Assembly: GCA_964304625.1 (NCBI GenBank)
Contig: OZ199839.1
Span: 4,139,092 to 4,203,091, forward strand
Source of the DNA: Kudoa neothunni
Lineage: Eukaryota > Animalia > Cnidaria
DNA length: 64,000 nucleotides
Direction of reading: 5' to 3'
In this document: positions 1 to 63,000 of the stretch, one piece after another
Layout of the letters: every line of letters starts with the position of its first letter
Position numbering within the stretch: the stretch's first letter is position 1
Position numbers and translations under genes: made by a program
The notes under the pieces: generated by a model
The model's database searches: none
What the model saw: the letters and a program-made list of their open reading frames with translations, nothing else
What the model was told of the DNA's origin: nothing

Positions 1-1697
1 GATTAAGAGAGATGAACCAGGGTGCAAGGGTAGTAAAAGATCTTGTTTCACCTTTTTACGGTACATGTCGAGGAGTTACAGTCGACAACTTCTTTACGTC
101 TATTCCACTCGCCCAGGAACTAATTTTCAAATAGAATAGCTTTGACTGGAACTGTCCGACCCAACAAACGCGAGATTCCTCAAGAATTCCTCAAAAATCC
201 TAGGCGTGAGGTTTTCTCGTCAACTTTTGGATTTCATGGAGACCTCACTTTGGTCTCATATGTCCCCAAAAAAATTACGCTGTGAACTTTCTCTCAACCG
301 AACATAACGATTGTTCTATTGAAAATGAGGAGAGAAAACGACCTAGTGTAATTATTCATTACAATAAAACAAAAGGCGATGTTGATATGGCGGACAAAAT
401 GACTGTCCATTATTCCTGTTCAAAACCAACACGCAGATGGCCAATGAAAATTTGTATGGATCTGCTAGACATTGCAGTTTTAAACTAATATCTTATTTAC
501 CAAAAAATATCCTGAATGGCAAAAAAATAATAAAAGCAAGAGACTACTTTATTAGAGAGTTATCCATTGATTTGGCTAGAGAAAATGTTTCTCGTCGCCA
601 AACAAATTCTGAAAGATTGCCAAGTTACATAAAGTATGGTTTGGGCCTTTTTGACGATAATAATAATAATAATAATCATAAATCAATAAACTCAAATTTA
701 CCACAATTACTAAATAGAAAAAGATGTTCCTTGTGCCCAAGAAATGTCGACAAGAAAACAAAGCTAACGTGTTTTCAATTGTCGAAAATTCGTGTGTGCA
801 AAGCATAGAGCCCAAAAAAATATTATTATACGTTACTGAATGCAACAAATAGCTTCTTTTTGAACAATGATATTATAGATCTTACTCAATGTAACTATTT
901 AAGCGCCATTTATGACACGCTGATTCTATTGCATCTTCGGTTCTGTATTACTTTTGGAACGAAAAACTATAATTTAGTGGGAAAATTAAATTATTTAACG
1001 TCTAGCATTATATCTTGTTTCAAAAAAAGGATCATTTTATTTTTATGCAGTTCTACTACATACGGATTATTTCTTAACTGTTTGAAGTAATATTTTGTGG
1101 TATAATTATTTTGTTTTTCTTTATTCTAAAAATAAAACTGTTAATTAACATTCAACATTCAAACGAAGGATAACAACAATTGGAGAAAACGAAGAATGCA
1201 GCTTAAACATGCAGTATAGTTAAAATTTGTATATTTTTATGAATTCATCAGTGAAACGCTTAGTAGTAAGGTTAATTAGAAAATATCGAATTTGGGTTAC
1301 ATAATCTCCGTTAAACCGAAAGTAAACGAATGTTTGTGCTTCCCGTGGTGATATTGCCGGTTTTGGTGATAACATTAAATATCCATTTTTCAGCAGTAAC
1401 ATATTATATCTAATTTAACTGCTATATATTCTTTTTAATGGTTAATTTGTTTTAATTTTAATGCACATAACTTTGCTTGGTTACATGATGCCTTAACTCA
1501 TAAATATTCTCATTTCCTACCCCACATAAGCTAAAAGCTTCCTTAAATGGTTCATTGCTGAATTTAACCATGTTGAAAATGTCATATAATTTATGTTTTG
1601 AAAAATGAAAAATTAATTAAGGTAAGTTTATACTGGGATCACTCAGTGACCCCACCTCGGACAGGGCGTGATTTTTTCTGAGTCCGTACAGGGAAGG
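1..1697 (+). mobile_element. Decayed piggyBac (PGBD4-like) transposon, 5' part outside the window
   Basis: Frameshifted transposase pieces GARVVKDLVSPFYGTCRGVTVDNFFTSIPLAQEL, YNKTKGDVDMADKM..TRRWPM and C-terminal Cys-rich RKRCSLCPRNVDKKTKLTC. Right terminus ...GGGAAGG followed by TTAA (1698-1701), with subterminal palindrome GATCACTCAGTGACC. Confidence 0.93.
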
Positions 1698-5268: not shown

Positions 5269-7582
5269 CAGTGGTTCTTAACTTGGGTTCGGTCGAGGAT
5301 TCTGATAGGTTCGATGAAAAAATTCCAATTATTAGATCAAATCTAGGATTAATATTCTTTATAGTTTTAATATTTTAAATAAACCTTCTACTGGTTGTAT
5401 TTATAATCCTAATTAGAAGCTTTATTAAAAAGATAATAGTGATAAATTAAAAAATTGTCGATAATTTAATTACAATTATGATTTGAGCGTTTGAAATTCT
5501 TTTCGATTTATCTGATTAGTACAATCACGTTAACGAGTTACAGAGTCTATTGCGTGGCAGTGTTATTTGCTTGCTAGTTTTGTGAGGGTTACTGGAAATA
5601 ATTATTGGCTCTTTGAATGTTTAACAAAAAAAGAAAGTGGTCAAATGAATTTGTACAGTTCGGGTTTATCTATGTTATGGAACTTAGTGGTATTCAGCGA
5701 CCTCTTTGCATGATATGTCACTCGAAGTTAAGTAATTCTGGTTCGGTACCAGCAAAACTAAAGGAGAATTTCACAGATGTCCATGAACATTCTGTATATA
5801 GGAATATGACTCTTTCCGAGCTTGAAGCAAAGAGAGAAAGGTATGATGAAAGAACCACGTTGCAAAATTTTGGATTTGTTAATATTGATAAGCCTATCTT
5901 AACAGCAACATATGAAGTTTCATATCTCATTGGCAAACAAGGTAAACCTCACAATATTGGTGAAACGCTCGTTAAACCTGCCACGTTGAAGATGGCAAAT
6001 ATTTTATTGGGAAGTATTGCAGAAAAATAATTAGCACAACTTCCTTTGTCAAATGAAACCGCTAAGAAAGAATTGATGATATGAGTAAAGACATTCCGGA
6101 TCAATTAATTTCTAATCTAATTTCAAGCAGAACAAAGTTTAGTTTAGAATTCGACGAAACTACTGATATCTCAAACCTAAGTCAACTGGTTTCGTTTGTT
6201 AGATATTTGAAAAATTGTGTGATAGTTGAAGATTTTATTTTTTCAAACCTTTAACAGCAACTACCAAGGCAGTGGATGTTAAGAAAGTTGTCGATGAGTT
6301 TTTCAAAGACAAAGAACTTTCATGGAATATGGTTTCTTCTATTTGCACTGATGGTTCCCCAGGTGTGCTGGGGCGTAACTCTGGTTTTTGCTCATTTGTG
6401 AAAGCAGATGTACCTCATATTATTGTTACACATTGCATTTTACATAGATATGCATTAGCAACAAAGAATATGCCTCCAAGGCTGGCAGAAGTGTTGAAAA
6501 TCGTTATCGATTGTGGAAATTTTGTGAGACTTAGTGCTTTGAATCATCTAAACTCCAAATATTTGTGCAACGAAATGGATTCTGAATTTTAGATATTTTT
6601 GTTTTATTCAATTGTGAGGTAGCTGTCTCGAGGTAAAGTATTAAATCACGTTTATACCCTGCGAAAGGAAATAGGTTTATTTTTGCTGGAGTGTAACCAA
6701 TGTCATGCTCAATGTTTCAATAATTTAGAAGTTATTCCTCTTTCGGCATACATGGCTGATATTTTTGATTCCATAAATTGTTTGAATCAGCAAATGCAAG
6801 GAAATCGAGTCAACATCATTGAGGCAGAGGAGTATCTTAGTGCATTCCGAATAAAATTATCTTTATACAAACGACGAATAATGGTCGAAATTCCGCAAAC
6901 TTTCCACTTTTAGACGAATTTATAATATTAATGATTGCGATAACAACGATTTGATCATTTTATCTTTCGAATTAAAGGAAATAATTGTTGCACATTTAGA
7001 AGAACTTTCTAACTCACTCGATGGCTGTTTCCCTTCTAAAAATTTATTCCCCGACTGGATGAGGCAGCCATTTAGCTTCGATACTTCAGCTGAGGATACC
7101 AATAATAAATATTTTGATGAATTTATCGAACCTCAACACAACAACATTAAAAAATAACTTTTTGAAAAAGTTTCACCATCAATCTTTTGGATAAATCAAA
7201 TTGAGAAATACCCTACAATTTCGATGAAGGCTTTGGAAGTTTTTATTGCTTTCGTAACAGCTTACCTTTGCGAACAATCATTTTTAAGATTGGTCACCAT
7301 AAAAAATAAGTTAAGAAATAAGCTTTTCTGCGAAAGCGATATGCGAATTGATTTCTCCAACACTTTGCCTCGTATTACGGAATTTGTTGCGAAAAAGAGA
7401 ACAAAAATCGCACTAATTAGCTTTATATTAATTTAATTTTCACATTTTTCAACTTTTATGATGTGCCAAATATTGATTAAATTATAATTCATTTTATTTA
7501 AAAAATTTTATGTTTGGGGGTTCGACGAGGCGTGCTATAGGATAGTAGTGGTTCAGCCATTCCAAAAGGTTAAGAAACACTG
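5269..7582 (+). mobile_element. Full-length decayed hAT transposon, Buster (ZBED5/ZBED8/SCAND3-like) clade
   Basis: TIRs CAGTGGTTCTTAAC / GTTAAGAAACACTG. Perfect 8-bp TSD ATATAGAG (5261-5268, 7583-7590) with central TA. Interrupted transposase 5617-7436: KKRKWSNEFVQFGF, CMICHSKL, GKPHNIGETLVKP, FDETTDIS, ICTDGSPGV, THCILHRYALA, AYLCEQSF. Confidence 0.96.
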
Positions 7583-28148: not shown

Positions 28149-28979
28149 TGCTTGACCAGATGTCATTCCTTCGGTCGACACCCTTTGTATTGCACATATT
28201 CATTTTTAACCTTGAATTTATACATTCATACACTCTGTCGTCAATTGCAACTCAACAGCTACACCATTGCAACATTCTTTTCATTCATAAATCTAATAAA
28301 GCTCAACTTGATGGCTTGGTGACTATTCGACGACTTATAAATGATGGTAGAGAGTTTTGGTGATTGGTGGCTTCTTTTTGTCTGTTTTTCATAGTTTTGT
28401 CTGTTCTCAAACTACTCGCATTAACATCAAAACATAAGAAAACTTTTTTTCTGTATTTTTACAAAGTTTTGTTTTTAATCCTCATTTGTTCTTTAAATGA
28501 ATTGCTATTATTGTTGTCGTTGTGAAAAGGTGTCAGGAGTTTTAAATATATTTGCCACATTCTTTTGGAAGGCGTTAAAATTTACTGTACATGTTGTGTT
28601 TGTTTGATGAAACGTCTATTCGTCTTGTGTAGAATAATTCGTAAGATCTACAATAGGAGGATTTAGTGAGAAACCCGATTACGAGTTTATCCCTTGATTC
28701 CTTAATACCGTTGGAATTCCCCAGTCTCACAGCGATAGGCAGAACATTAATTAGTTTGACGTGTTGTTGTGACTGGCGTTTTTTGTTAAATTTTTGTAGT
28801 GTGTATATCACTGGGTATTTTGGTGGTTTCTTAGTTGAGATTGATTATTTTCCTAGGAATCAGACATTGTTGTGGTTGTCAGCGAATCATTAAAATCAGA
28901 TTTAGTGTTATTGGATCGCTGGTTTAAGACCGAATTTTGTTCAGAATCGCACTGACGATTATCTGTGATAGCGTGGAGA

Positions 28980-29912
28980 ATGGAACAATTATTGAAGGAT
29001 GCACTTGACAATCCATCACAAATTACTACTGTTCTAAATAGTTCCACCACCTTCAACGACGGTCCCTTGCTACAATTCTTGAAAACTTTTGTGTCATGTG
29101 CTGTGCTTATAATATTCTCTGAGTTGGGGGACAAGACCTTTTTCATTGTGGTCATTCTGTCTGCAAAGCATCATAAATATAATGTTTTTGTTGGCTCTTT
29201 TTGTGCTCTGATTACCATGACAATACTGAGCGTGATGATGGGGTTCGCTTTTTTGCATTTTGCCTCGCCAACCATTATACGACTGATAACTTTTTGTATC
29301 TATGCTATATGTGGCTGTTATATTCTTTACGATTCCTATAACACGGATGAATGCTCTTCAAACTCCAGCGTCTACAAAGAAGCCTCTAATGATATCGATA
29401 ATATTGGATCGAAAGTAAACCAGATAGTTTGCTGGTAGGTATGTGAACTAATTTTTAGATTCACATGGACGAAATACCAACTTTGATGATTGATAGGAAA
29501 AAATGTTTACCATTTGAAAAGTTTTATACTATTTTAAGAATTATTTTCAAAATAACTACAAGATATCTTAGTCCTGTACTGTTACAGGCTTACTTTTTAG
29601 TCTTCCTAGCTGAATGGGGCGATCGATCGCAGATTGCTACAGTTTTCATGGCTCGAAATCATGTAATCTCAATCGACGTCTCTGTGTTAAATATTATCCT
29701 GTGTAGATCTTTTCCGCAATTAGTGGCGCCATTTTTGGTCATCTACTATGTACAATTTGTGCTCTAATGTGTGGTTGGATGGCGTCCAGTGTATCTATAC
29801 GAAAAAGTAAAGATTGTTGTTACTTAACTACTATGTTTTTTCTTGATTATTTTTAGTTAACATCGTTTCCGGAATAATCTTTATTTTATTCGCACTGCAT
29901 AGTCTTTATTAA
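28980..29912 (+). CDS. TMEM165: TMEM165/GDT1 (UPF0016) Golgi Ca2+/Mn2+ antiporter, 4 exons
   Basis: Both family motifs SELGDKTFF and FLAEWGDRSQIAT, then GAIFGHLLCTICA. Three GT-AG introns near 29416, 29663 and 29807; TAA at 29910-29912. Confidence 0.95.
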
Positions 29913-30506: not shown

Positions 30507-33500
30507 CCCTTTCACGTTCTTTTTTTTGTTTTTCTTAAAATATATATATATATATATATTATTAATGGGATATTTATTATTAAAAACTTTAAATTTTAAT
30601 TTTAAAGGATAATTTTATCATGCGGATTTTCTAAATTTTGTGCAGGTGCATTTAAATGCATACTGGGATTAAATGGTAAAAAAGTTGAAAATGAATAAAA
30701 GTTTCAAACCAACTATTCTAACTTTAGATTTAAAAAATAATCATTTTAAATTTCACAATTCAAAAAAAATTGTCAACAATGACTCAAAAGCATGTCTCCC
30801 ATTAACCATTTCCAAATTTGTTTCATTAGTATTATTAATAATATATAAATAGATTTGTGATACAAAAATGATGCAATTTTTTTGTTATAAATTTTTTTTA
30901 ACAAGTATTGGTTTGGCTTATTTAATTTCACTGATATTAGAAGACAACATGACATAATAATTTGCAAGAAAATAACACACAATATAATGAAACGTACTGA
31001 ACAATTCAATCTAATTAATTTAATTTGTGATGAAATTCGTAGAAACAATTCCTTTCTTTAACCAGAAAGCAGCCCCATTTGCATTTAATTCATTTGATTT
31101 GCGTGACCTTTTGGCAAAGTTTGCATCTATCGCGTGTGGGCGTGACTCAGGGGAATGCCCATCATTATCGGATCGGATATCGTCAGAAAGAGAGCAAGAC
31201 AATTTTTCGGCTTATTGAATTTTCCAGTTTATTATCTACCGATAATGATGGTCACCTGTGCCTTAACTTTAAGTTTTTTTTCTTTTTAACAAATATTAAA
31301 GTCTCACATACCGAACAGGTGAAATTCAGTAAACTTAATACAGAGTATTGGCGCAAGTGCGCTATGTACAAAAAACATAAATTTATTGGGGTTTAAAATA
31401 ATCGGTAATTTCGATTCGTTTGCATTATTATCGGGTTATTTCAGACATGGACTCCATAACTATGTGTTTTGAAAACAATGGTGTTGAGTTTTCTAACAAA
31501 AATTTTCTGATTAAATTAATTGATTGTTTGAGTTCCGAAGTTGACACAAGCGCTTCAGGTAAAGCTATTGATTCCTCATGTATTTTCTTTCCCTCTTCTT
31601 CAATATTGTTGGTTTCGCCATACGTTTATCTAAAAATTAAAGTTTATAAACAATTAAATAATTTGACGAAATTCTCAACATTATTTTTATAAAAATCTTG
31701 AGATAAGTTTCATTATCTATTCATTAATATTTAAATTGGTGTATTGTACTATCAAAGTACAATGTTCAAAAAGTCTAGATTTTCTAAATCAATTTTGAAT
31801 TATAGTCGATGATACGTTTTCCCATGCATGATTTAAAATTTTAATAAAACCAAAATGATATACTTAATTAAATTTGAATTATCCATATTTATTACGTTGT
31901 ACTCTTCGTATCGTAGTGAAATTTTTTTTAAATTAATTCCAAAAATATTTTTAAATTCTACGAACCAACCATTATTACCAGTAAATTTGTCAATACCTAT
32001 GGATTTAACGATACTTTTTGTCTTTTCAATAATGAAGTAAGCAGAAATTACCTTTTTTTCATTTCGCATTTTAGTTATTCGTGTATAGAATAAATTAATT
32101 AACTCCGCGTACTTGTCTTCGTTTATTCTTTTGTTTGTAGCCGAAAAAATAAAATTAATAATATCATTTTGAGAAGCTAAAATTCTATTAACAGTAGAAT
32201 GTCTTGAAAATATATTATATTGGGATTGGATAATTTTATATTATTAGATGGCTTGGGAAGTTTAAAAGTCATTCCTTTTTCTCCTTTGAGTGATTTAATC
32301 GAATTATAGTATTCGATTATTTTAACTTTTCCAGCCATTGTTCGCAGATTCCTTATCATTTTTGTTTCACAGAATTCAAATAGAAGATTAGTTGAGGGTT
32401 AAACTGAACAAAATGTTACGCAGTAGCGAGATTTTAGTTTTAGCACACTGACTTAAATTTATACGTCTTTAATAAAAACTTTTGATCTTCGCTTGCTCAG
32501 TTAACATTAATTTAAATAATATAAAAGAAAAGTTTGGGTAAAAAGTTTAAAATATCCTTTATATTTAAAAGAACTTGTGAAATTACGCAATACCAAGGTT
32601 CGACTGTATTTCGCTCTCTTTTATTTTTATTGATTTACTATTTCTCTGTATAATAGCCAAGAGTCACCATAGCTTTATTTATTCCCCAATAAAATATCTT
32701 CAAGTTAACATTTTAAGCCACCATTTTGCAGGTTTTCTAGACTCAGGTTGCTTTGAACATCGCCCACCCTTAAATATCATCTGTTCATCTACATATAACT
32801 TCCTTTCGGTTAAATCTTTAAGCAACTTGAACTTAAATGATCTAAAAATTGTCTTATTTTCGAAAATATACCAAAATCAGGGTTGGATTGTTTCGTTATT
32901 GTTTTTGAATTGACAAAATTTTCAAATCAACTCAAATCTACAGCGTGTGAACACGTTTGCAATTGGCTCAAATTTAAAACATGTTTGCGAATAACAACGA
33001 TATCTAGGCATCCTTATTACATCCATTAAGATGAGGACCTCAATATACTTTTCTATTTCATCATTATCGATTTGGAAACATGAGTTAGACTGTCTGGAAT
33101 AAAGGTTTGCCTAAACATCAAATCTACGAAAGATTCATTGATAAATTGGTTGAAGTAATCGATAGGAGTTAAAATCCCATTTATTTCTTCCAAATAACAC
33201 TCTGAATTCTCAAAATCAATAACATCATCTAACAAAATTTTCTCTATATTCCAATTAAATTTGAAGTTCGAGTTGCATTTTTCTTCGTCGGTAGCCTCCT
33301 TATGGTTTTTAGAGTAGTCATTGAATTTTTCGAAATTATAGATATTTTCTTTTTTTAACATATCTCGGGTTCTGGAATATCTCCATCGGACAGAAAAACT
33401 ATTTTTTAATAAATTTTTCCACTTTTCGCAGATATGTCCGAAATATCGTATGAGTATCTCCAACACGGCTGTGCCACGAGATCACAATGTGAATTTAAAT

Positions 33501-40400: not shown

Positions 40401-43400
40401 ATAATTTCAGTACAAAAATTTGATAAAACATATTTAACAAATCTTTGGTCAGTTATTTGTTTCAATTTTTATATTAATTAATATATTTTCTCATAATGTT
40501 ATTGTATACAATAATCGAGTAAGAAATGCTTTCAGAAGAATCTAATAATTATAAAAAATCCATACTTTACCAAATTGCTCATCCAAGGTTCCAAGTAAAT
40601 TATCACAACATCTCTTATTTCATCTTGGAAGGAGTTCAAAAAGTCCAATGTGCATTGTATAAATCCGATGGTAAAGGAGGGAGCATCCATCGATATCATT
40701 TCACTTACCATAGATAGTACTGAAAGATGTGAATTACAAATCCATTCCCCTAATTATATGTATAAAAATAAAAACGTAGCATTTTCAAATTAACCTCTTG
40801 TGTTAAGATAATCTAACGAACGACCCAACTCGTATCGCTTGGCCATAATTTTGAGGAATGATACAGCTTGAAGCTTCGCTTGAATATTTTGGCTCAGGAA
40901 TATTTTAAACGCCTAAAATGATACCTTAAACACACATTTTTGTAAAAAGACCTATTTACAACTGCGATAGCCTTTCCAATGAAAAAATTTTCGAAACTAT
41001 TCAGCGAACACATGATTACTGATGGCTACATTCACACACATTTAGATATGCATATAAAAAATCAAAATCCGTAAAATTTAACTCACTTTACATCTAGCTT
41101 TAAACAGATTTAACTGTTCCAAAATTTTCATTGCATTTTGTGACTCCAATTTTTTCAAAATGTCCCCATTTAAATTAATTTCAATAACTGTACCGAGAAC
41201 ATTCACCTAGAATCGTTACATAAAAGCATCTTAAAAGAACGACTTACATCTTTTATAGTCGAATATTTTATCACGTCTGTTATAACTTGTTTCGATTTTT
41301 TTCTCTCATTTAATACAGCGTATTTCAACACAATCTCATGCTTTTTTATCTACATTAATTGCATTGTGAATCCAACTCGATCGAGTGAAAATTCATACTA
41401 TCATATTCACATGTGGGGTTGTGTTGTAGGTGACAATAAAATTAATATCTGTATCATCGGTAATGAATGTCGAAATATAACCTAAATCTGGTTTGTCGAT
41501 GATATTTCCAAGTTCTTTTGCATCGTCAATAAATATGATTTTCGAATAAATCTACAGTTTATTTAATACATCGTATTATTTTATCGTTTTATACTCTCTT
41601 CAAATATGTTGAATAGTTAAAAATATCGTAAAGGTCCTTTGGAAAGTTTATCAAGTAGATTTTTTGTAAGCGAATCATAACAAACGAATCCGATTGCTCA
41701 TAGTCATGAGGATTAACCAGTTTTATCTAATAAAAAATAATATTTATTGATTATGGGGTTTTCAATTACAATTTGATGCTTATTTTGAAATCCGTATGCG
41801 TCAATCACTAATATCCAAGGAGCATCATTATCAGTACGAGGTATTGTATTGAGTAGTTCGAAAAGCGAATCAAATGGTGCTTTTTGGACATTTCTATGCG
41901 ATGGAATTTTGCAATAATTACCAAACTTTAAATCTAACGAATTTACTCGAATGAGGCCAACTTTAAAAGATATATCTCGGTAGAAGGATCCAATTTGGAT
42001 TGAGGAGATAACTTTAGCTAAATATTAAATGATATATGTAAAATTTATTTTAAATTTTAATTAAAATTACATTGATAATGAGGTTGAGTTGGTCTTTAAA
42101 GTTGTACTGAATTTGTTGAACCATACTTTTGTTTACAAAACTACTGCTTGAGAATATGTCCGAACTATCGTTGTTGTTGTTGTTATTATTCAAACTTTTA
42201 GTGGGCCTAAATGCCTCGTTAATTATGCGGTGATAAACATCAAAATTCTCTTTCAATATAGACACGTACAAATGATTTGCTGTTAGCTTTAGGTTATTTT
42301 CAGACATAAATTGCTGTTGTAATTCGGTAAAGTGATTGACCTTAAATAAGTACTCTTCCAATTTCTTTAACAAAGTCTTGTCTACAGATCTACAGTTGGT
42401 GATCACAGATTAGATCGGAATTGAAGAATGAATGATTACTCCACTTCTGTAAAATTTTCGTAGTTTGAAGGCAAATTCATATAACAACTGGCCAACACAT
42501 CAACAATAGTGTTAGAGTTTTCTAATTTTGGTGACTTGGCAGTGGAAATACTTTTTGGGGTATACTCAATGAGGTTATCAATAAAACTAAATAATTAGTT
42601 ATCGAGATAAATGTTTTCTCAGATACGTCTCCATCTTTGGAATGGATTGTTTAATATAGAAATCAAATGGCTGCATAAACTCTTCTTTTGCTCGCGATGT
42701 CTTATTGGCTATGTTTTGTAAAATCTAATCGCACAGACAAATAGTTAAAATATCACTAATATCTTTTGAATGTTTGCCTACTTTGGATAATAGCGTTACT
42801 GCACGGTTCAATTTTTTCTCGAGCGCGTCATTTTTGGCATATTTAGAAATGCAGTATTGTATCTGCGGATTAAAAAATCTCAAGCAAAATATACTGGCCA
42901 CTGTGTTTTTCGCATCTTCAGGATATTTCACGTGAATTGCCTATTATTGCGACCGAATAATATATATTTTATAATACAAAGTTAATTAACTACCGTATAC
43001 AACGCTTTAGCTATAATTTTCAGCTGTTCAGGTGATCTATTAAATTTTATTTTTTGCGCTACGTAACACAACCAATACTTTTCATGATAACGATACAAGG
43101 TTTTCATAAATATATTAACCAGATTTGCCAAATTGTTGCGATTATTGTTCATATTACAAGGAGCATCAATTCTTCTACTATCAACTTCGTATTCGTTTTG
43201 CGGTTCGTTTACTATCTTGTCTACCACTGGTTGAACCAAAAGACGAACGTGCTCCATGGCTTTCACCCGAAATATGCTTTGGATCAGTTTGAGTGCTCCT
43301 GACTCGGATCTAAACAGTACTTGCTTGCTAGTGGAAGATGCTACCTGTCGAAGAATTTATTATTAATTTATTTTAATTTATAACCAAAACTTACTTCCTC

Positions 43401-54400: not shown

Positions 54401-55731
54401 ATGAGAGAGCTACTTGGCACATTACTTTGTATAATACAAATCATTAATTTCGTATAATTTGATGTAATTAACTAATAAAATTCCATCTGTAGAGTAATTT
54501 CAGATTAATAATTCGGCGAGAAAACTGAAGTGTTGTAAATACCTTTAAGTTTTAATAGTTAATTTTGATGTGCAATGTAATTTCTAAATATGCTCGTTCC
54601 ATATACATATTTAATGGATAGTTCTACTTAAGTATTAAGTAATTAAAAATCCAGAAATTCTTCATAGACCTCCAAAAATCTGCCACAACCCACCTGTGGA
54701 GCATATGATCAACGATTGGTAAGACTGCTCTAGAATTGTACTCTCTATTTAAATAAAATCATAGTTTTACGCATATTGTTGCAATTCATTTTAGTTCGTA
54801 GCGGAAATCCAAAGAAATTTGTAGTTTGCAGCACATCATCCCTTTTTATCAATTTTAGTGACTAGTCTGTTTACTGGTTTTCAAAATAATTTCTTTTTTA
54901 ATTTTTTCTCATTTGCATGAGCATAATCTTCTTTAAATCAGATTCACAAGGTATAATTTTGTAAAAAAGAGAAAATTTTTTGCGTTGGGCATATATATTA
55001 TGGTTTCTGATTCATTTCTAGCAAGAAACTGAACACCAACGTTGATATGTAAGTTAAATAATTTTGAATTGTATATAATTAAAATGAATAAAACAAAGGA
55101 AGTTTTAACTAGTTATATAAAAGTTTAAGCTTAGCCATACACCACCGTATGTTGATATGAATTTATAAAGTGAGTAATTAGAATAAAATACAAACTTTAT
55201 ATTAAATATTGAAATTGTTTATGATTTTAGAATGAATTTCACATATATAGAACTCTCATCTCGCCTAAATCCATATGACTAATTAGACCAACTGTTTTCC
55301 AAATGTTTTGTTAATAACAAGCTGGTTGGACCATTATTCATGTACCAAAATGGTATCGTTACCATCGGTTATCCTATAGTATTATGGAGTCGGTAACTAC
55401 AGAGCATTCTCAATCCGTAAAATATTATTTTTAAAACTAAGATCGGTTATTCAATTGATAAGTGAAGTTTCTAGCATGTATTTATATTTGAATTATCTAC
55501 CTATCACTATCGTCAGAGAAACATCAACCACGAGTTCTAAACAAACTTGCTCAAAATGGTAAAGCAGTTCGCAAGGCAAAAGAAATTAAAACTGAGTTTG
55601 ACCAGAAAAGGCGCAAGAAACATCGATGGGGGACTGCAAAGAAAATATTATTTACCGAAAAACATATAGTAAGGTAATTAAAGTAAAGTAGGTATAGTGA
55701 GGGAATGGTAATAAGTTGTAACTGATAATGA

Positions 55732-57006
55732 TTAAGCGTCAGCGTTAAAGAGGTACTCGTACACATATTGGAAATGGGTTTCAAAGTCATCCTCAAAGTC
55801 ATCACAACTGAAACTGTGTACTGCGAACTCGAGTTCATCACATACTTCTGAACAACTCATCTGATCCTTTCGTTGGAGGTGTTGTTTAATGTGTTCGAAC
55901 ACACCATCCATTGGATGCTCCTTGTTAGCATACGTAGGTGGAATGATGATGAAATTGAAGGAGAAGTCTGAGTAACATCGAGAAACATGATTGAACGCAA
56001 ATTGCAACTGAGGAGAGTAGTCAGAAACGATAGTGACACTATATTTATGTTGTTCAATAAATTTTTCCTTTATATCTTGAAGAATATTTATGTAGTTGGA
56101 GAAGACGATTTTATCCCAGTTGAGCGAAACGAATGCGTTATTGTTCTTACCCATTGCAACTAAAACATCAAAGCTCATTTGAGTTCTGTGTTGAGAGGGT
56201 TTATTTTGTCTCAAGGTGTAACTAAAATTATCAAACATTTCGTCGTGGTAATCGACAGTGAAATTATAGACTTTTTTTCTGAGAAAAAGTACATCTTGGA
56301 TGAGCTCGGATGTTTCCACGTCCATTGCGTAGCTAAATTAAAACGAAGAATAATTTAAACTATCGTTGTGCAACTGTCCAATAATGATATTTTACCTTAA
56401 CAATGAGTAAAGCTCGTTTATAGTAAAACTTCCCATCCTTCTAGTGAAAGAAGGGGCGATATGGTGCTTAACACTCATGAACGAAGAAATGAAGGAACTT
56501 GAAACTTTCCTTTTGATGCGATTCGAAATCATATTCGATAATGTGTAAGGACTAAGATCGTCGTGCCAGGTCAAAATATGCCGTAGATACTCTTCTTGTG
56601 TAAACGTCAACTGACTCAATTCGTCAACATTTTCGCTATGCAGACGGACAGTTAGCTCGTATTTCAGATGATAATATATCTTTTTGACACTAGCCAGTGG
56701 TAAACCTAGCTTGGCTGCAACAACTCTTGGACTTGCTCTTTTTTTCTGAATGAGTAAATAAAAATTTAAATCAATAAGAAAAGAAGAAAAATTTGATTTT
56801 TGTATCACTCTGATAATGTCCTAATAGTCCAATAATTACTGATAAGCATACTAACGTACACATAAATAGGAAATTTTCGTGACACATTCGCATCGTTAAA
56901 GTCAATAGATATATTAAAATATAGGAATTATTACTCGTATCAATCGCTTCATGTTTTGAATAAGAGTGGTCTCATATTCCAACTGACCGATAGAAGTAGA
57001 ATCCAT
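55732..57006 (-). CDS. Intact spliced gene derived from a Tc1/IS630 (DDE_3) transposase, putative domesticated HTH DNA-binding protein of about 344-365 aa
   Basis: Exons 57006-56935, 56820-56396 (possible in-frame 63-nt intron 56746-56808) and 56332-55732, GT-AG and in frame. HTH ASPRVVAAKLGLPLASVKKIY; second HTH LTFTQEEYL..LSPYTLSNMI..KVSSSFIS; degenerate DDE motifs TIVSDYSPQL and IIPPTYANKEHPMDGVFEHIKQHLQR. Confidence 0.75.
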
Positions 57007-57749
57007 TTGATCAAAATGCTCACAGTCGAACTTTTATTAGAATCAGCAATGTAAACAAGAGTTGCATTGTCACAAGATATTTGTTGCTGCCACTTCATTT
57101 TTAGGCTTTTAGTTCATTTTCCAGGGTTACTATTTTGAAATAAACTATTCAAGCTGCCACTGTTATATTTAGGTGTGAGGCGTCGCCTTGAGTGTTGGTC
57201 GCTTTTTTTGGGAATTGCCTAGCAAATAGATTCGACCTAATGTCACGTTTTACACTTCATGATAGTTAAGAATTGTTGTAGTTATTTCACAACAACAAGA
57301 ACTTAACCTTTGAATGATGATGCTATTAACAATTAGTAACGCTACATCATTTTAACAAGCCTCAAGGTTTTTTCTACATACTGATTAATCGTTTATATTA
57401 ATTAATGTAAAATGCAACATTCTTGATCTGAAACGTATTTCTAAAACATGCCGACGTAAATATATCTAAGCACTCATCTGTTCATTAGATAAACAAAAAT
57501 AATCTTCGGTACCATCACAATGACCTAGGCCTACAATTTTTGAACACGTCTATTGAGCGTATAGAAAATATGGTTCAATATTTTTTTAGCTTCACGGAAA
57601 ATTTGAAATACACAGAGCCAACTAATTTTTAACTTGGCGTTTTAATTTATTCAGCACAATGGAAAAACAAGTAAACATTTTATTTCTTTAAACCTTCATA
57701 AAAATTAATTCACTGATCTTTTCACAGCTTCAAATAATTAACGCTTTTC

Positions 57750-58850
57750 ATACCTTATACAAAAAAGAATAATAATTTATATGAATTTTTACATGGAAGT
57801 ATTTTAAGGAGGATATATTATGAAGAGGAAGACGGCGAATCGAATAATTTTTATCGTAGAAAATAATTAATTTATTAAAAAGAACACACACTACCAATAA
57901 TTATCCCAACAACATCAAAAGTCTGATCTGATTCTGCTCAATGGGCGGAATTATAATTGCACTTAGGTCACATAGAATAGCGAGCGTACATTCTAACCGA
58001 AGTTTCATCACCGAATGCAAAAACAGTGACCTTATTGATGCGTTAACTTACAATTTAATGAATATTAATCTACACTAAATTTCCATTCCAATTATATAGT
58101 GGGCGTGAGGAGCGTTTAATGCTTTATAGGAGGTGAGAACCACATTTATAGTTTGGAAGCGTTGTTTAATTGTATCACTATTAGATCCTACAGACAAGAT
58201 AATCACAAATTTCCCTTTTTGTTTGTGCATTACGTTAATATTCTATTAAATAAGAAAAATATAATGCTGTATAAACTCCTATATTTGATGGAAGAGCACA
58301 CGGAGGAATATTTTTTTTAATATTACGTACGGTACTTAAACACATAAGCATCTTCCCAAGTAATTCGGCTAACAATTTAAAAAATACGAAAAAATTGCCA
58401 TCAACCTCATTTCCAATAGAACGAAAAAGTAGGTGATTAAGGTCAACACAACACTTTCACGAACATTGCAATTTGATTGCATCGCTTTCATTTTGAATAA
58501 GATATAGAAAAATATTCATCAATAAAGTAACCCAAAATAAAGAGCTTAATTCCATGAATAATTATTAACAAAGTTATATATTACAGGCAACATAATCTTC
58601 CTTCAAAAGTAACAAGCTGGTCATCTACAGTGACATCCCGATTTGTAGTATAACATAATGATAGGATATAAATTAACTTAGGTAGGATAAACGTCACGAA
58701 TCAAACCAAATTTTTGTTTTTCTCTGCGCTCACCAACGCTGTAGTCATCTAATTACACAGATCATGATATAGATTTGAACTTTCGAATCTATATCGGCGA
58801 CGTATTTGGCTATCTTCGATCACATTGATTAGCTCCGGTTATTGTTTAAC
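57750..58850 (-). mobile_element. Heavily decayed piggyBac transposase remnant
   Basis: Minus-strand fragments RRYRFES, ERREKQKFGLIRDV, YTTNRDVTVDDQLVTFEGR. Ends not defined. Confidence 0.75.
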
Positions 58851-60025: not shown

Positions 60026-63000
60026 ATGGGTGACTATTATAAGAGCATTTTGGGAATAGATTTCTCCAACTACGAATGCAATGTAATATATTGATGTGAA
60101 TTATTGTCGATAAGATGCCATTTTCGGCCGATGGATAGGAATGGTTTAATAATGTGACAGATAAAATGCAAAATTTGGAATCCATCAAAATGGATTACAC
60201 ACATTTATCTGATCTTGAATTTTTGTCCAAATTTCATAATTTGGTACTTTGATGGTTGATTTGATATTTTGTTTTAATGAGTGGCTGGTGTAGGAGGAAA
60301 TTAGTTGTAGAAATAATAATCTCGAGAGTTTGCCCGATAGAGAAGCTGAGCAGCCCAACCAACTAAAAGTTCTCATTAAAATTATTTATGTCATCACGAT
60401 ATTTACGGATTGTGGTAGGTTTTGAAGTTATCGAAAAACCGTTTGACGTTTGAAACCCTAGAAAATTATCTAACTAGATACGATACACTTGAAACTATAG
60501 TAATATTATTTCTTTTATTAGTTTTATTTATTAGTGTTGTTAGGATTTATCAGAAAACAATCTTGAGGATATTCCTCTCTCCATAAAAAACCAACATAAT
60601 CTCATCGTGTTAAATCTATCAAAGAACAGGTAATTCGACAAATAGAGATGATTTAGATGAAGCATTTGTCTTTTAGAATATCTTCCTTGGATCGTGATGT
60701 GATTTTTGTCGGTCATTTTATTTTTTAAAGTCGTTTCTTGTAGCTATTTACCGATATGGAACAACTAAGATTTTTGAATGTATCCCGCAATCTGCTGGGT
60801 ATTTTTGGGTTTCTTTTAATTGATGTTGTATAATGTTGTCTATAGAGGAAATGCCTTTCAACATTCAATGTCAGGAGATACAACAAATGGTAGTGGTTGG
60901 CGTGAGGATAGATTTAAATTATATTTATAGGATTTAAGCTATAACCCTTTTAAAACCTTGGACTCTGAGTGAGAGTGATCTGTTGATGACTCTAATTGAA
61001 TATTTAGTTTATTTCTTAATCTATCATCAATTAAAATATTGGATCTCTCCCATGTCAATGTAAAAATTAATAATTAATGTTATTCGTCGATGTGGGGGAA
61101 TTTTAGTTGCAACAATTATCTGAAAACACCAATCTTTTTACATTGTTTTGTCCCCTAACTAACTTGATTGGTATTTCGTTCGAATTTTATTTCATTATTA
61201 ATTTACTGCCACTAATATAATAGAACTCAATGTATCACATAATGAATTGAAAGAAAGTAATTTATTTTAATTTACAAATAAAAATTTGATTTCTATTGTT
61301 TAGTTCCTTTGTCTGTGTACGAGATTGTTTCGCTCAAAAAACTCAATCTCTCACACAATAAAATAACTATGATATCGTCAAAGATTTGTATACAAATTTT
61401 AACTACATAAGACTATATGTGGCCATTAAAATTTAATCCCTTTTAAATTAAATTGCGCATATGCAAAATTATTTTTAGCCCTCGAACACCTGAGGAAAAA
61501 AGTTACACAAATACCATGTGGTGGCCACATGAAAAAATGTATTAAAATAATTATTTACGTTATTTTTTACATCTTGAAATCTAATAAATTTAGTAAAAAA
61601 ATCAGGGATGCATTTTTGTGACGCTTATTTGCGCAAGTGTGAAGAACGGGAATAATTATGCTTTTATGTATGTTGAATAGCGTGAAAAATTAGAGATAAA
61701 CTGTTTCATTTTTCATATTTTTCTTCCCATTATTATTTTAACAGATACGATTTTGTTTTAATCTCAAAATCCATGATTTTATCATGAAATCTCTTCACCA
61801 GTTGACAGAAATATGTTAAAGTGTCAAGTTGTTATAGAAACCAAAAAATGGATGTTAATTAATTCCTTGCTTCAAAGTATAGTAATAATGTTTATATTAC
61901 CACAGATAAGCTTTTTTATATATTTTAACTAATTAAACATTATTATTTATAAGGTGGGCAGATTCAGGTATTCTTGTAACTTTTTTTCTTTTTTTGATTT
62001 TAAGCGGAAGTATTAAATATAAAACTCCATTATTTAAGTATCTTTAAGAACACCATTATACTATAAAATACACCAAGGGGAAACAGATAATAAATTATTT
62101 TCTAGCGTTATTGATTAACAAGCGTTGATTGACCACCTCCAGGTATTCGAGGGCTGACTATTATACAACTGTTATTTAATAAGTTAACAAATGTATTTTC
62201 ATAAAAAACTAATCGAATTAATCGATGCATTATATGTTAAAAATAATTCATAATAATTAATCTTAGTCAAACTAATAGGATTAAATTCTAACGGACAAAT
62301 AGTCATTACTTCCTTTTTTTATAAAAATCTAATTTTACTCCTGAATAGCCCATTTGGTTGAGCTCACTAGTTTGAGTTTGTCTTCAAATAGACTGGGAAC
62401 TTTACCAGTATATTCGTTGTTTTTTCGTTTTACTTTTAATTGATTACAGTCTGCAATCACCCACCTTGTCAGTTTGAGATGTCTATACTTGAATGGTAAC
62501 TTTAAGTGTGATATTTATGGAATGTATTTTGTTTCTCAAGACAACAAACTCAATCTGTATACAATTCCCGATAGTTTTGAAAAATTGGAGAATCTAGTAT
62601 ATTTTGTATAACAATTGACAAATGAGGTTCAATTTTTCGTAAAGACGACATTTATGTGTGCATTCAATGAGCTCACTTCTATTCCCAAGTCTCTGTGTGA
62701 ATGCGGCCAGCTGAGCACTCTGATCGTCAATGACAACGATCTTCAAACTGTTCCCGAAGAGATTTATTATTTAAAGAACATGAAAGTCGCTTTAAATATA
62801 ATCAATGCAACTTTTTAAAAAATCTATAGACCTTTGATTATCGCAATAATCCGAATTTCGTTATGCCAAAACGTCCCTCACTCGATAACGATGAATTTCG
62901 AGGAATGGATTTCTCTTATGAAAATGTGAAAAATATGGTTATCACCATGTTGAAACAGAAATTCAAACTTGAGCAGGAAGGTTTTTATTATTTTTTCTTT

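Follow-up and report, generated by a model that had tools for sequence, protein, structure and literature searches.

Gene structure and genomic surroundings

The gene under study (copy A) lies on the minus strand at positions 55732-57006 of the window, i.e. the whole 64,000-nucleotide stretch of the Kudoa neothunni genome that was analysed. Once spliced, its open reading frame is unbroken from the ATG at 57006 to the TAA at 55732, as the initial annotation had stated, and is made up of three exons encoding 340 aa. The parts of the gene and of the block duplicated with it are as follows (window positions).

57007-57900, minus strand: upstream block common to the three copies described below; no further genomic copies, no credible Rfam match
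56935-57006, minus strand: exon 1, beginning with the ATG, 24 codons; this ATG and the GT donor are conserved among the three diverged copies
56746-56934, minus strand: intron 1, 189 nt, GT-AG, phase 0
56396-56745, minus strand: exon 2, HTH1, linker and HTH2, a predicted paired-like DNA-binding region; basic, pI 9.9
56333-56395, minus strand: intron 2, 63 nt, GT-AG, phase 2; GT and AG kept in all copies
55732-56332, minus strand: exon 3, DDE-derived domain with an eroded triad (R158, D244, D282) by alignment with resident transposases, acidic (pI 4.8), and stop codon
55350-55731, minus strand: downstream block common to the copies; the duplicated block ends here, without a TIR

The length of 340 aa was obtained by comparison with the paralogs and replaces the 365 or 344 aa given initially. 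The ATG, the stop codon and all four splice dinucleotides are conserved in three copies, in which the intron interiors are 57-75% identical, and the splice junctions of copy A are predicted from this conservation. In intron 1 the identity between A and C is 65%, equal to that of fourfold-degenerate sites, and a 15-nt block close to the 3' end is invariant across all three copies. Retention of intron 2 leads to two in-frame stops. The 365/344-aa models were rejected: they apparently need an acceptor at 56821, the AG of which is not conserved, and the extra 25 codons contain in-frame stops in both paralogs. According to the genome paper, there is too little Kudoa RNA-seq for annotation, and the intron length listed for the species is 49 nt (PMC12239612). 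The description of the introns as micro-introns does not hold for intron 1, with its 189 nt. Database searches and fold predictions were run exon by exon, and the exons were joined for pairwise comparison and dN/dS.

A basic stretch spanning the junction of exons 1 and 2 is present in all copies, and the 3' end of exon 1 would form the first half of an NLS-like stretch running on into exon 2. Upstream of the ATG, positions 57007-57500 are conserved above introns and fourfold sites (72.6% vs 64%, Fisher p=0.015), and are probably promoter or 5' UTR; an Rfam search of the upstream region gave a single match, which was at chance level. The downstream block (55350-55731) is probably 3' UTR.

Other features of the window are listed below.

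437-808, plus strand; 33053-33466, minus strand; 31833-32359, minus strand: broken transposon remnants, presumably two piggyBac pieces and one pogo-like piece
5617-7436, plus strand: element in pieces, which we take to be hAT/Buster-like
22572-64000: 41.4-kb repeat, found again at C2:4203292-4244733 with 99.8% identity, directly after the 200-N gap at the window's end
28965-29438, plus strand: GDT1/TMEM165 exon; the closest database matches (55-56%) are two unnamed Logan proteins, one from SRR31175926, the source of which is possibly another myxozoan
43075-43353, minus strand: weak RasGAP match (E 0.03)
62615-62818, plus strand: weak LRR match

The weak RasGAP and LRR matches, and the gelsolin repeats found farther downstream, are consistent with the NF1 and FLII neighbours that had been named for this locus. 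Pfam searches with three of the window's transposon remnants were blank. The earlier statement that the gene stands among dead transposons is accurate for the window, but not for the genome as a whole, which holds many DDE_3 transposases with long open frames.

Copies of the gene and purifying selection

The genome searched comprised 40.26 Mb in four contigs (17.15, 12.04 and 11.05 Mb, and 18.2 kb). The published assembly has 40.2 Mb after purging, in three chromosomes and a circular mitochondrial contig, with a GC content of 30.4%, about sevenfold coverage and residual haplotypic duplication (PMC12239612); the GC content of the window is about 30%. Genome searches with exons 2 and 3 and both flanks found four loci (A, A', B and C), i.e. 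three distinct loci at 67-74% DNA identity, plus A', a probable assembly duplicate. Copy A is not a lone gene but belongs to a small paralog family.

The coding region of A' is identical to that of copy A and lies within the 41.4-kb repeat. The two halves of this repeat differ by 41 indel events, nearly all of them single bases in homopolymer runs, and by 16 substitutions, and the gelsolin repeats of the FLII-like neighbour were found only after its second stretch. The repeat is probably an uncollapsed assembly overlap, i.e. a false duplication, and the same differences led to rejection of A' as a recent transposition. In the assembly, the repeat doubles the NF1-like gene, copy A and the start of the FLII-like gene.

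Copy C (C1:15,688,263-15,689,545) is intact and encodes 340 aa. It is colinear with A at 57% protein identity, has both introns in common with it, and agrees with it in start, stop and splice sites. Copy B (C2, about 4,256,200-4,258,550) is inverted and lies about 18 kb from the locus. Its coding region carries six single-base indels (frameshifts) and one in-frame insertion; when read in A's frame it has no nonsense codon, against about nine predicted for neutral evolution, and its non-coding indel rate is not above that of A. Copy B may truly be a pseudogene, or its indels may be artefacts of low coverage that mask an intact third paralog.

The block shared by the copies is about 2.5-2.9 kb long, including 0.9 kb upstream, has ragged ends, and lies at unrelated sites. 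A repeat search detected no inverted repeats flanking A, B or C, a profile of the resident TIRs had no match at the block ends, and genome searches with exons and flanks revealed no related MITEs or young copies. The lack of TIRs at copy A, already noted in the initial annotation, was confirmed by the repeat search, the resident-TIR profile and an end-to-end test. With three distinct loci and no young copies, the copy number also argues against an active element, which had been named at the outset as the alternative.

Both A and C have remained intact, and the purifying selection on them is moderate. The dN/dS comparison that had been proposed for the gene gave an omega of about 0.5 between A and C, significantly below 1: the value was 0.40 by NG86 (bootstrap 0.28-0.56) and 0.49-0.55 by codon ML (p 2e-5 to 1.5e-4 against omega=1). 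The HTH half (N-terminal 140 codons, omega 0.58-0.67) is less constrained than the DDE-derived half (0.45-0.48). Between A and C there is no indel in 1,023 coding bases, where 21 would be expected from the flanks and introns (P about 6e-10).

By branch, omega was significantly below 1 for C (0.45, p=1e-4), but not for A (0.65, p=0.18) or B (0.69, p=0.19), and the amino-acid constraint on A is thus weak. A's own branch has a length of 0.12-0.17 neutral changes per site, enough for about 5-7 stops, and several indels as well, to be expected in the absence of selection. None was observed, and the neutral probability of finding no stop is 0.001-0.004.

Relationship to resident DD34E transposons

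At least 150 resident DDE_3 matches were found in the genome, many with long open frames. One resident family is of the IS630/Tc1 type. Its elements have TIRs about 50 nt long and TA target duplications, and their transposase gene has a DD34E triad and is interrupted by two spliceosomal introns, each about 40 nt long and in some cases GC-AG. This intron-bearing family is represented by on the order of 100 copies or fragments genome-wide (family loci L024-L026, L028, L030, L033, L035, L038-L040 and L042). At L038, L042 and C1:13.394 Mb, an inverted second catalytic exon (93% identical) lies about 0.9-1.3 kb away, giving mirror-ended structures.

In hhalign comparisons, exon 2 of A and C matched its counterpart in the resident transposons with a score of 38 (shuffles reached 17 at most), an E of about 4e-6 and a probability of 84-88%, and with the resident-transposon profile, exon 2 of copy A was the only match in the window's six frames. 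Language-model (Atlas) features of exon 2 pointed to HTH_Tnp_Tc3_2 and HTH_Tnp_IS630, and the HTH units recognised in the initial annotation are borne out by this HTH-like character of the exon. Exon 3 is only 12-17% identical to the resident transposases. Its hhalign match to resident exon 3 was weak (E 0.005, score 24.6; shuffles at most 21.9), with a register that is clear in the C-terminal half, and its language-model (Atlas) features pointed to DDE_3 (0.93-0.94).

Pfam gave nothing credible for exon 2 or exon 3, whether from A or from C. AlphaFold modelled exon 3 with a pLDDT of 47 alone and of 51 when the resident transposases were supplied as the alignment, the latter not being independent evidence. 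The order of strands and helices in these models, at their low pLDDT (47-51), fits an RNase H-like fold, and Foldseek and VIA-align found no significant transposase match for them.

The positions of the introns provide a further point of comparison. Intron 1, in phase 0, lies 12 codons before the HTH1 Gly in the resident family and 13 codons before it in copy A; intron 2, in phase 2, lies 18 codons before the first Asp position in the resident family and 17 in copy A. By a rough estimate, the probability that two introns in a 1-kb frame agree by chance in phase, and in position to within one codon, is low (1e-4 or less). The same phases, and positions that agree within one codon, indicate that the introns came with the transposon. 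The introns, read initially as a sign of domestication, were therefore inherited from the resident intron-bearing transposon family. The presence of parent and tamed descendant in one genome, with the same two introns, means that transposase introns can predate domestication and are unfit as evidence for it. Together with the exon 2 match and the weak match of exon 3, these results support the descent of copy A from an IS630/Tc1-type DD34E transposase.

A second eroded gene was found at C2 about 9.433 Mb on the minus strand (L057:3758-4900). It is intact and triad-less, has two introns that agree with those of copy A in position and phase, and is 17-20% identical to copy A. It occurs once in the genome, and distant relatives of it lie at C3:9.547 Mb and C3:4.746 Mb. 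In a tree of exon 3, copy A lies on a branch 4.1 long, on the side of the intron-bearing family (85/83); two alternative placements, next to the intronless family (p-AU 0.19) and next to this other eroded gene (p-AU 0.20), were not rejected. The second gene may be an ancient paralog or an independent recruitment, and the exon 3 tree fits either. It is conceivable, although improbable, that Kudoa, having no DNA methylation, repeatedly recruited dead transposases of its own intron-bearing DD34E lineage (A/B/C, the C2:9.43 Mb gene and the C3 relatives) as trans-acting transposon repressors.

Catalytic residues and possible function

According to the alignment, the catalytic positions are occupied by R158, D244 and D282 in A, by K, D and N in C, and by K, E and D in B. 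The altered motifs quoted in the initial annotation are present in copy A, and 37 residues do separate D244 and D282. The first Asp is replaced by a basic residue in all copies (R in A, K in B and C), indicating that its loss predates the copy split, while the variation of the second and third positions among the copies indicates that the triad is not constrained. DDE transposases use a two-metal mechanism, and since the triad is lost, the protein of copy A should not cut DNA, nor would its own enzyme have been able to spread the copies. The pI of exon 3 is 4.8 in A and 5.8 in C, compared with 6.2-9.5 in the resident transposases. In copy A, other residues have taken the place of the basic linker and of the recognition-helix residues that these transposases have. 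Since TIRs, triad and young copies are all lacking, it is difficult to see how selection could act on an element, and the selection described above would act at the host level.

These results would best be explained if copy A encoded a domesticated, catalytically dead transposase that acts in the nucleus as a non-cutting regulator binding nucleic acid or chromatin, a prediction that we hold to be reasonably probable. In the Kudoa lineage, an IS630/Tc1-type DD34E transposon with introns would have left one copy behind. This ancestral copy lost its TIRs and the first catalytic Asp, as the alignment shows, and diverged far from the mobile family. It was then duplicated with its flanks, as an ordinary gene, to give A, B (nearby and inverted) and C (on chromosome 1). 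Judging from transposase anatomy, the basic NLS and the tandem HTH would contact DNA, probably no longer at the parental TIR and with a changed or relaxed specificity, and the RNase H-like domain, acidic on its surface, would serve as a scaffold for oligomerisation or for interaction with other proteins. As to the host-exapted, non-cutting protein put forward initially, its transposase origin, lost catalysis and host maintenance are supported, but the introns no longer count as a sign of exaptation.

The main rival explanation is that the gene is a transposon repressor kept by the host, the dead protein of which would poison the transpososomes of the resident DD34E elements by hetero-oligomerisation, or block their TIRs. 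Such a role would agree with the finding that the DDE-derived half is more strongly constrained than the HTH half, with a parental family that is abundant and has TIRs and TA target duplications, and with a Kudoa genome that consists of 45% repeats and is without cytosine-methylation genes (PMC12239612). However, about 4 amino-acid changes per site separate the protein from the resident transposases, and its linker and recognition-helix residues have been replaced, which makes TIR recognition or co-assembly doubtful; we regard this role as rather unlikely. The gene family could also be decaying after past selection, copy A being relaxed or recently dead, as B appears to be. The omega values of A (0.65) and B (0.69), neither of which differs from 1, and the six single-base coding indels of B would be expected in that case, but copy A is without the stops and indels that should have accumulated on its branch, and the splice sites and the upstream region are conserved, so that decay is improbable.

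The presence of a common block of about 2.5-2.9 kb, 0.9 kb of it upstream, in three copies at unrelated sites would also follow if the gene were a passenger or helper ORF of an unrecognised mobile element, which moved the 2.5-kb block and was itself the level of selection. Against such an element, there are no TIRs, no second ORF and no young or non-autonomous copies, the block ends are ragged, and B is inverted about 18 kb from the locus, as local duplication would place it. The copy number largely refutes this explanation, and we consider it very unlikely. It is highly improbable that the protein is an active nuclease or transposase in which D244, D282 and another acidic residue make up a rearranged active site. 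Such a site would be in keeping with the second Asp, retained by A and C, and with the Asp that takes the place of the Glu in A, but every copy has a basic residue instead of the first Asp, the intact paralog C has Asn as its third residue, and TIRs are lacking.

As a presumed domesticated transposase, copy A can be compared with several known systems. It resembles the resident DD34E transposons in the layout of exons and introns (a phase 0 intron ahead of HTH1 and a phase 2 intron ahead of the first catalytic strand), tandem HTH, length and C-terminal motifs, but differs from them in having no TIRs of about 50 nt, no TA duplications, no intact triad and few copies. None of the marks of active IS630/Tc1/mariner elements (TIRs with TA, an intact triad, many near-identical dispersed copies) was found for copy A. 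An intact ORF under purifying selection (between paralogs), low copy number and lost mobile ends, which are among the marks of domesticated transposases, are present. Pogo-derived genes and catalytically altered piggyBac-derived genes are domesticated transposases, and like copy A they are host-maintained transposase ORFs with the DNA-binding region retained and the catalytic site altered. The same is true of SETMAR (mariner) and CENP-B, which are also domesticated transposases (10.1101/656579). Unlike all of these, copy A comes from another transposon lineage, has no added host domain, and is under much weaker constraint (omega about 0.5).

The TLEWI elements of bivalves are Tc1-like, have spliceosomal introns that were present before the copies spread, occur at low copy number without TIRs, and have been proposed to be domesticated (10.1101/656579). 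By this description they are like copy A in type, introns, copy number and lack of TIRs, but they are DD36E elements of bivalves, whereas copy A has lost the triad, has 37 residues between the last two positions, and has a DD34E parental family. In Sphaerospora molnari, MULE-derived FLYWCH transcription factors have been proposed (10.64898/2026.02.11.705288); these would also represent myxozoan transposase domestication, although from a different superfamily, and no domesticated Tc1/IS630 gene was found in that paper's text.

No description of copy A was found in the literature searched. Word-based protein searches (exon 3 and exon 2 alignment) found no homologs outside the K. neothunni genome, in databases with thin myxozoan coverage, where a conserved neighbour gave only two close matches. 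HMMER searches with the exon 3 alignment against 1.84 billion representatives revealed no credible homolog; the single match, a low-complexity repeat protein, was spurious. From these comparisons, copy A is a candidate for a lineage-specific new example of the already known domestication of transposases. Myxozoans have lost most ancestral genes; few gains are visible in them, and a transposase-derived gene that was kept and duplicated would count among these. Should the protein regulate transposons or host genes, it would bear on the management of mobile DNA in a repeat-rich parasite without cytosine methylation.

It was also found that the 18.2-kb contig (C4) of the assembly is a very divergent mitochondrial genome, with cox1, cox2, cob, nad1 and nad5-like frames and a GC content of 43%.
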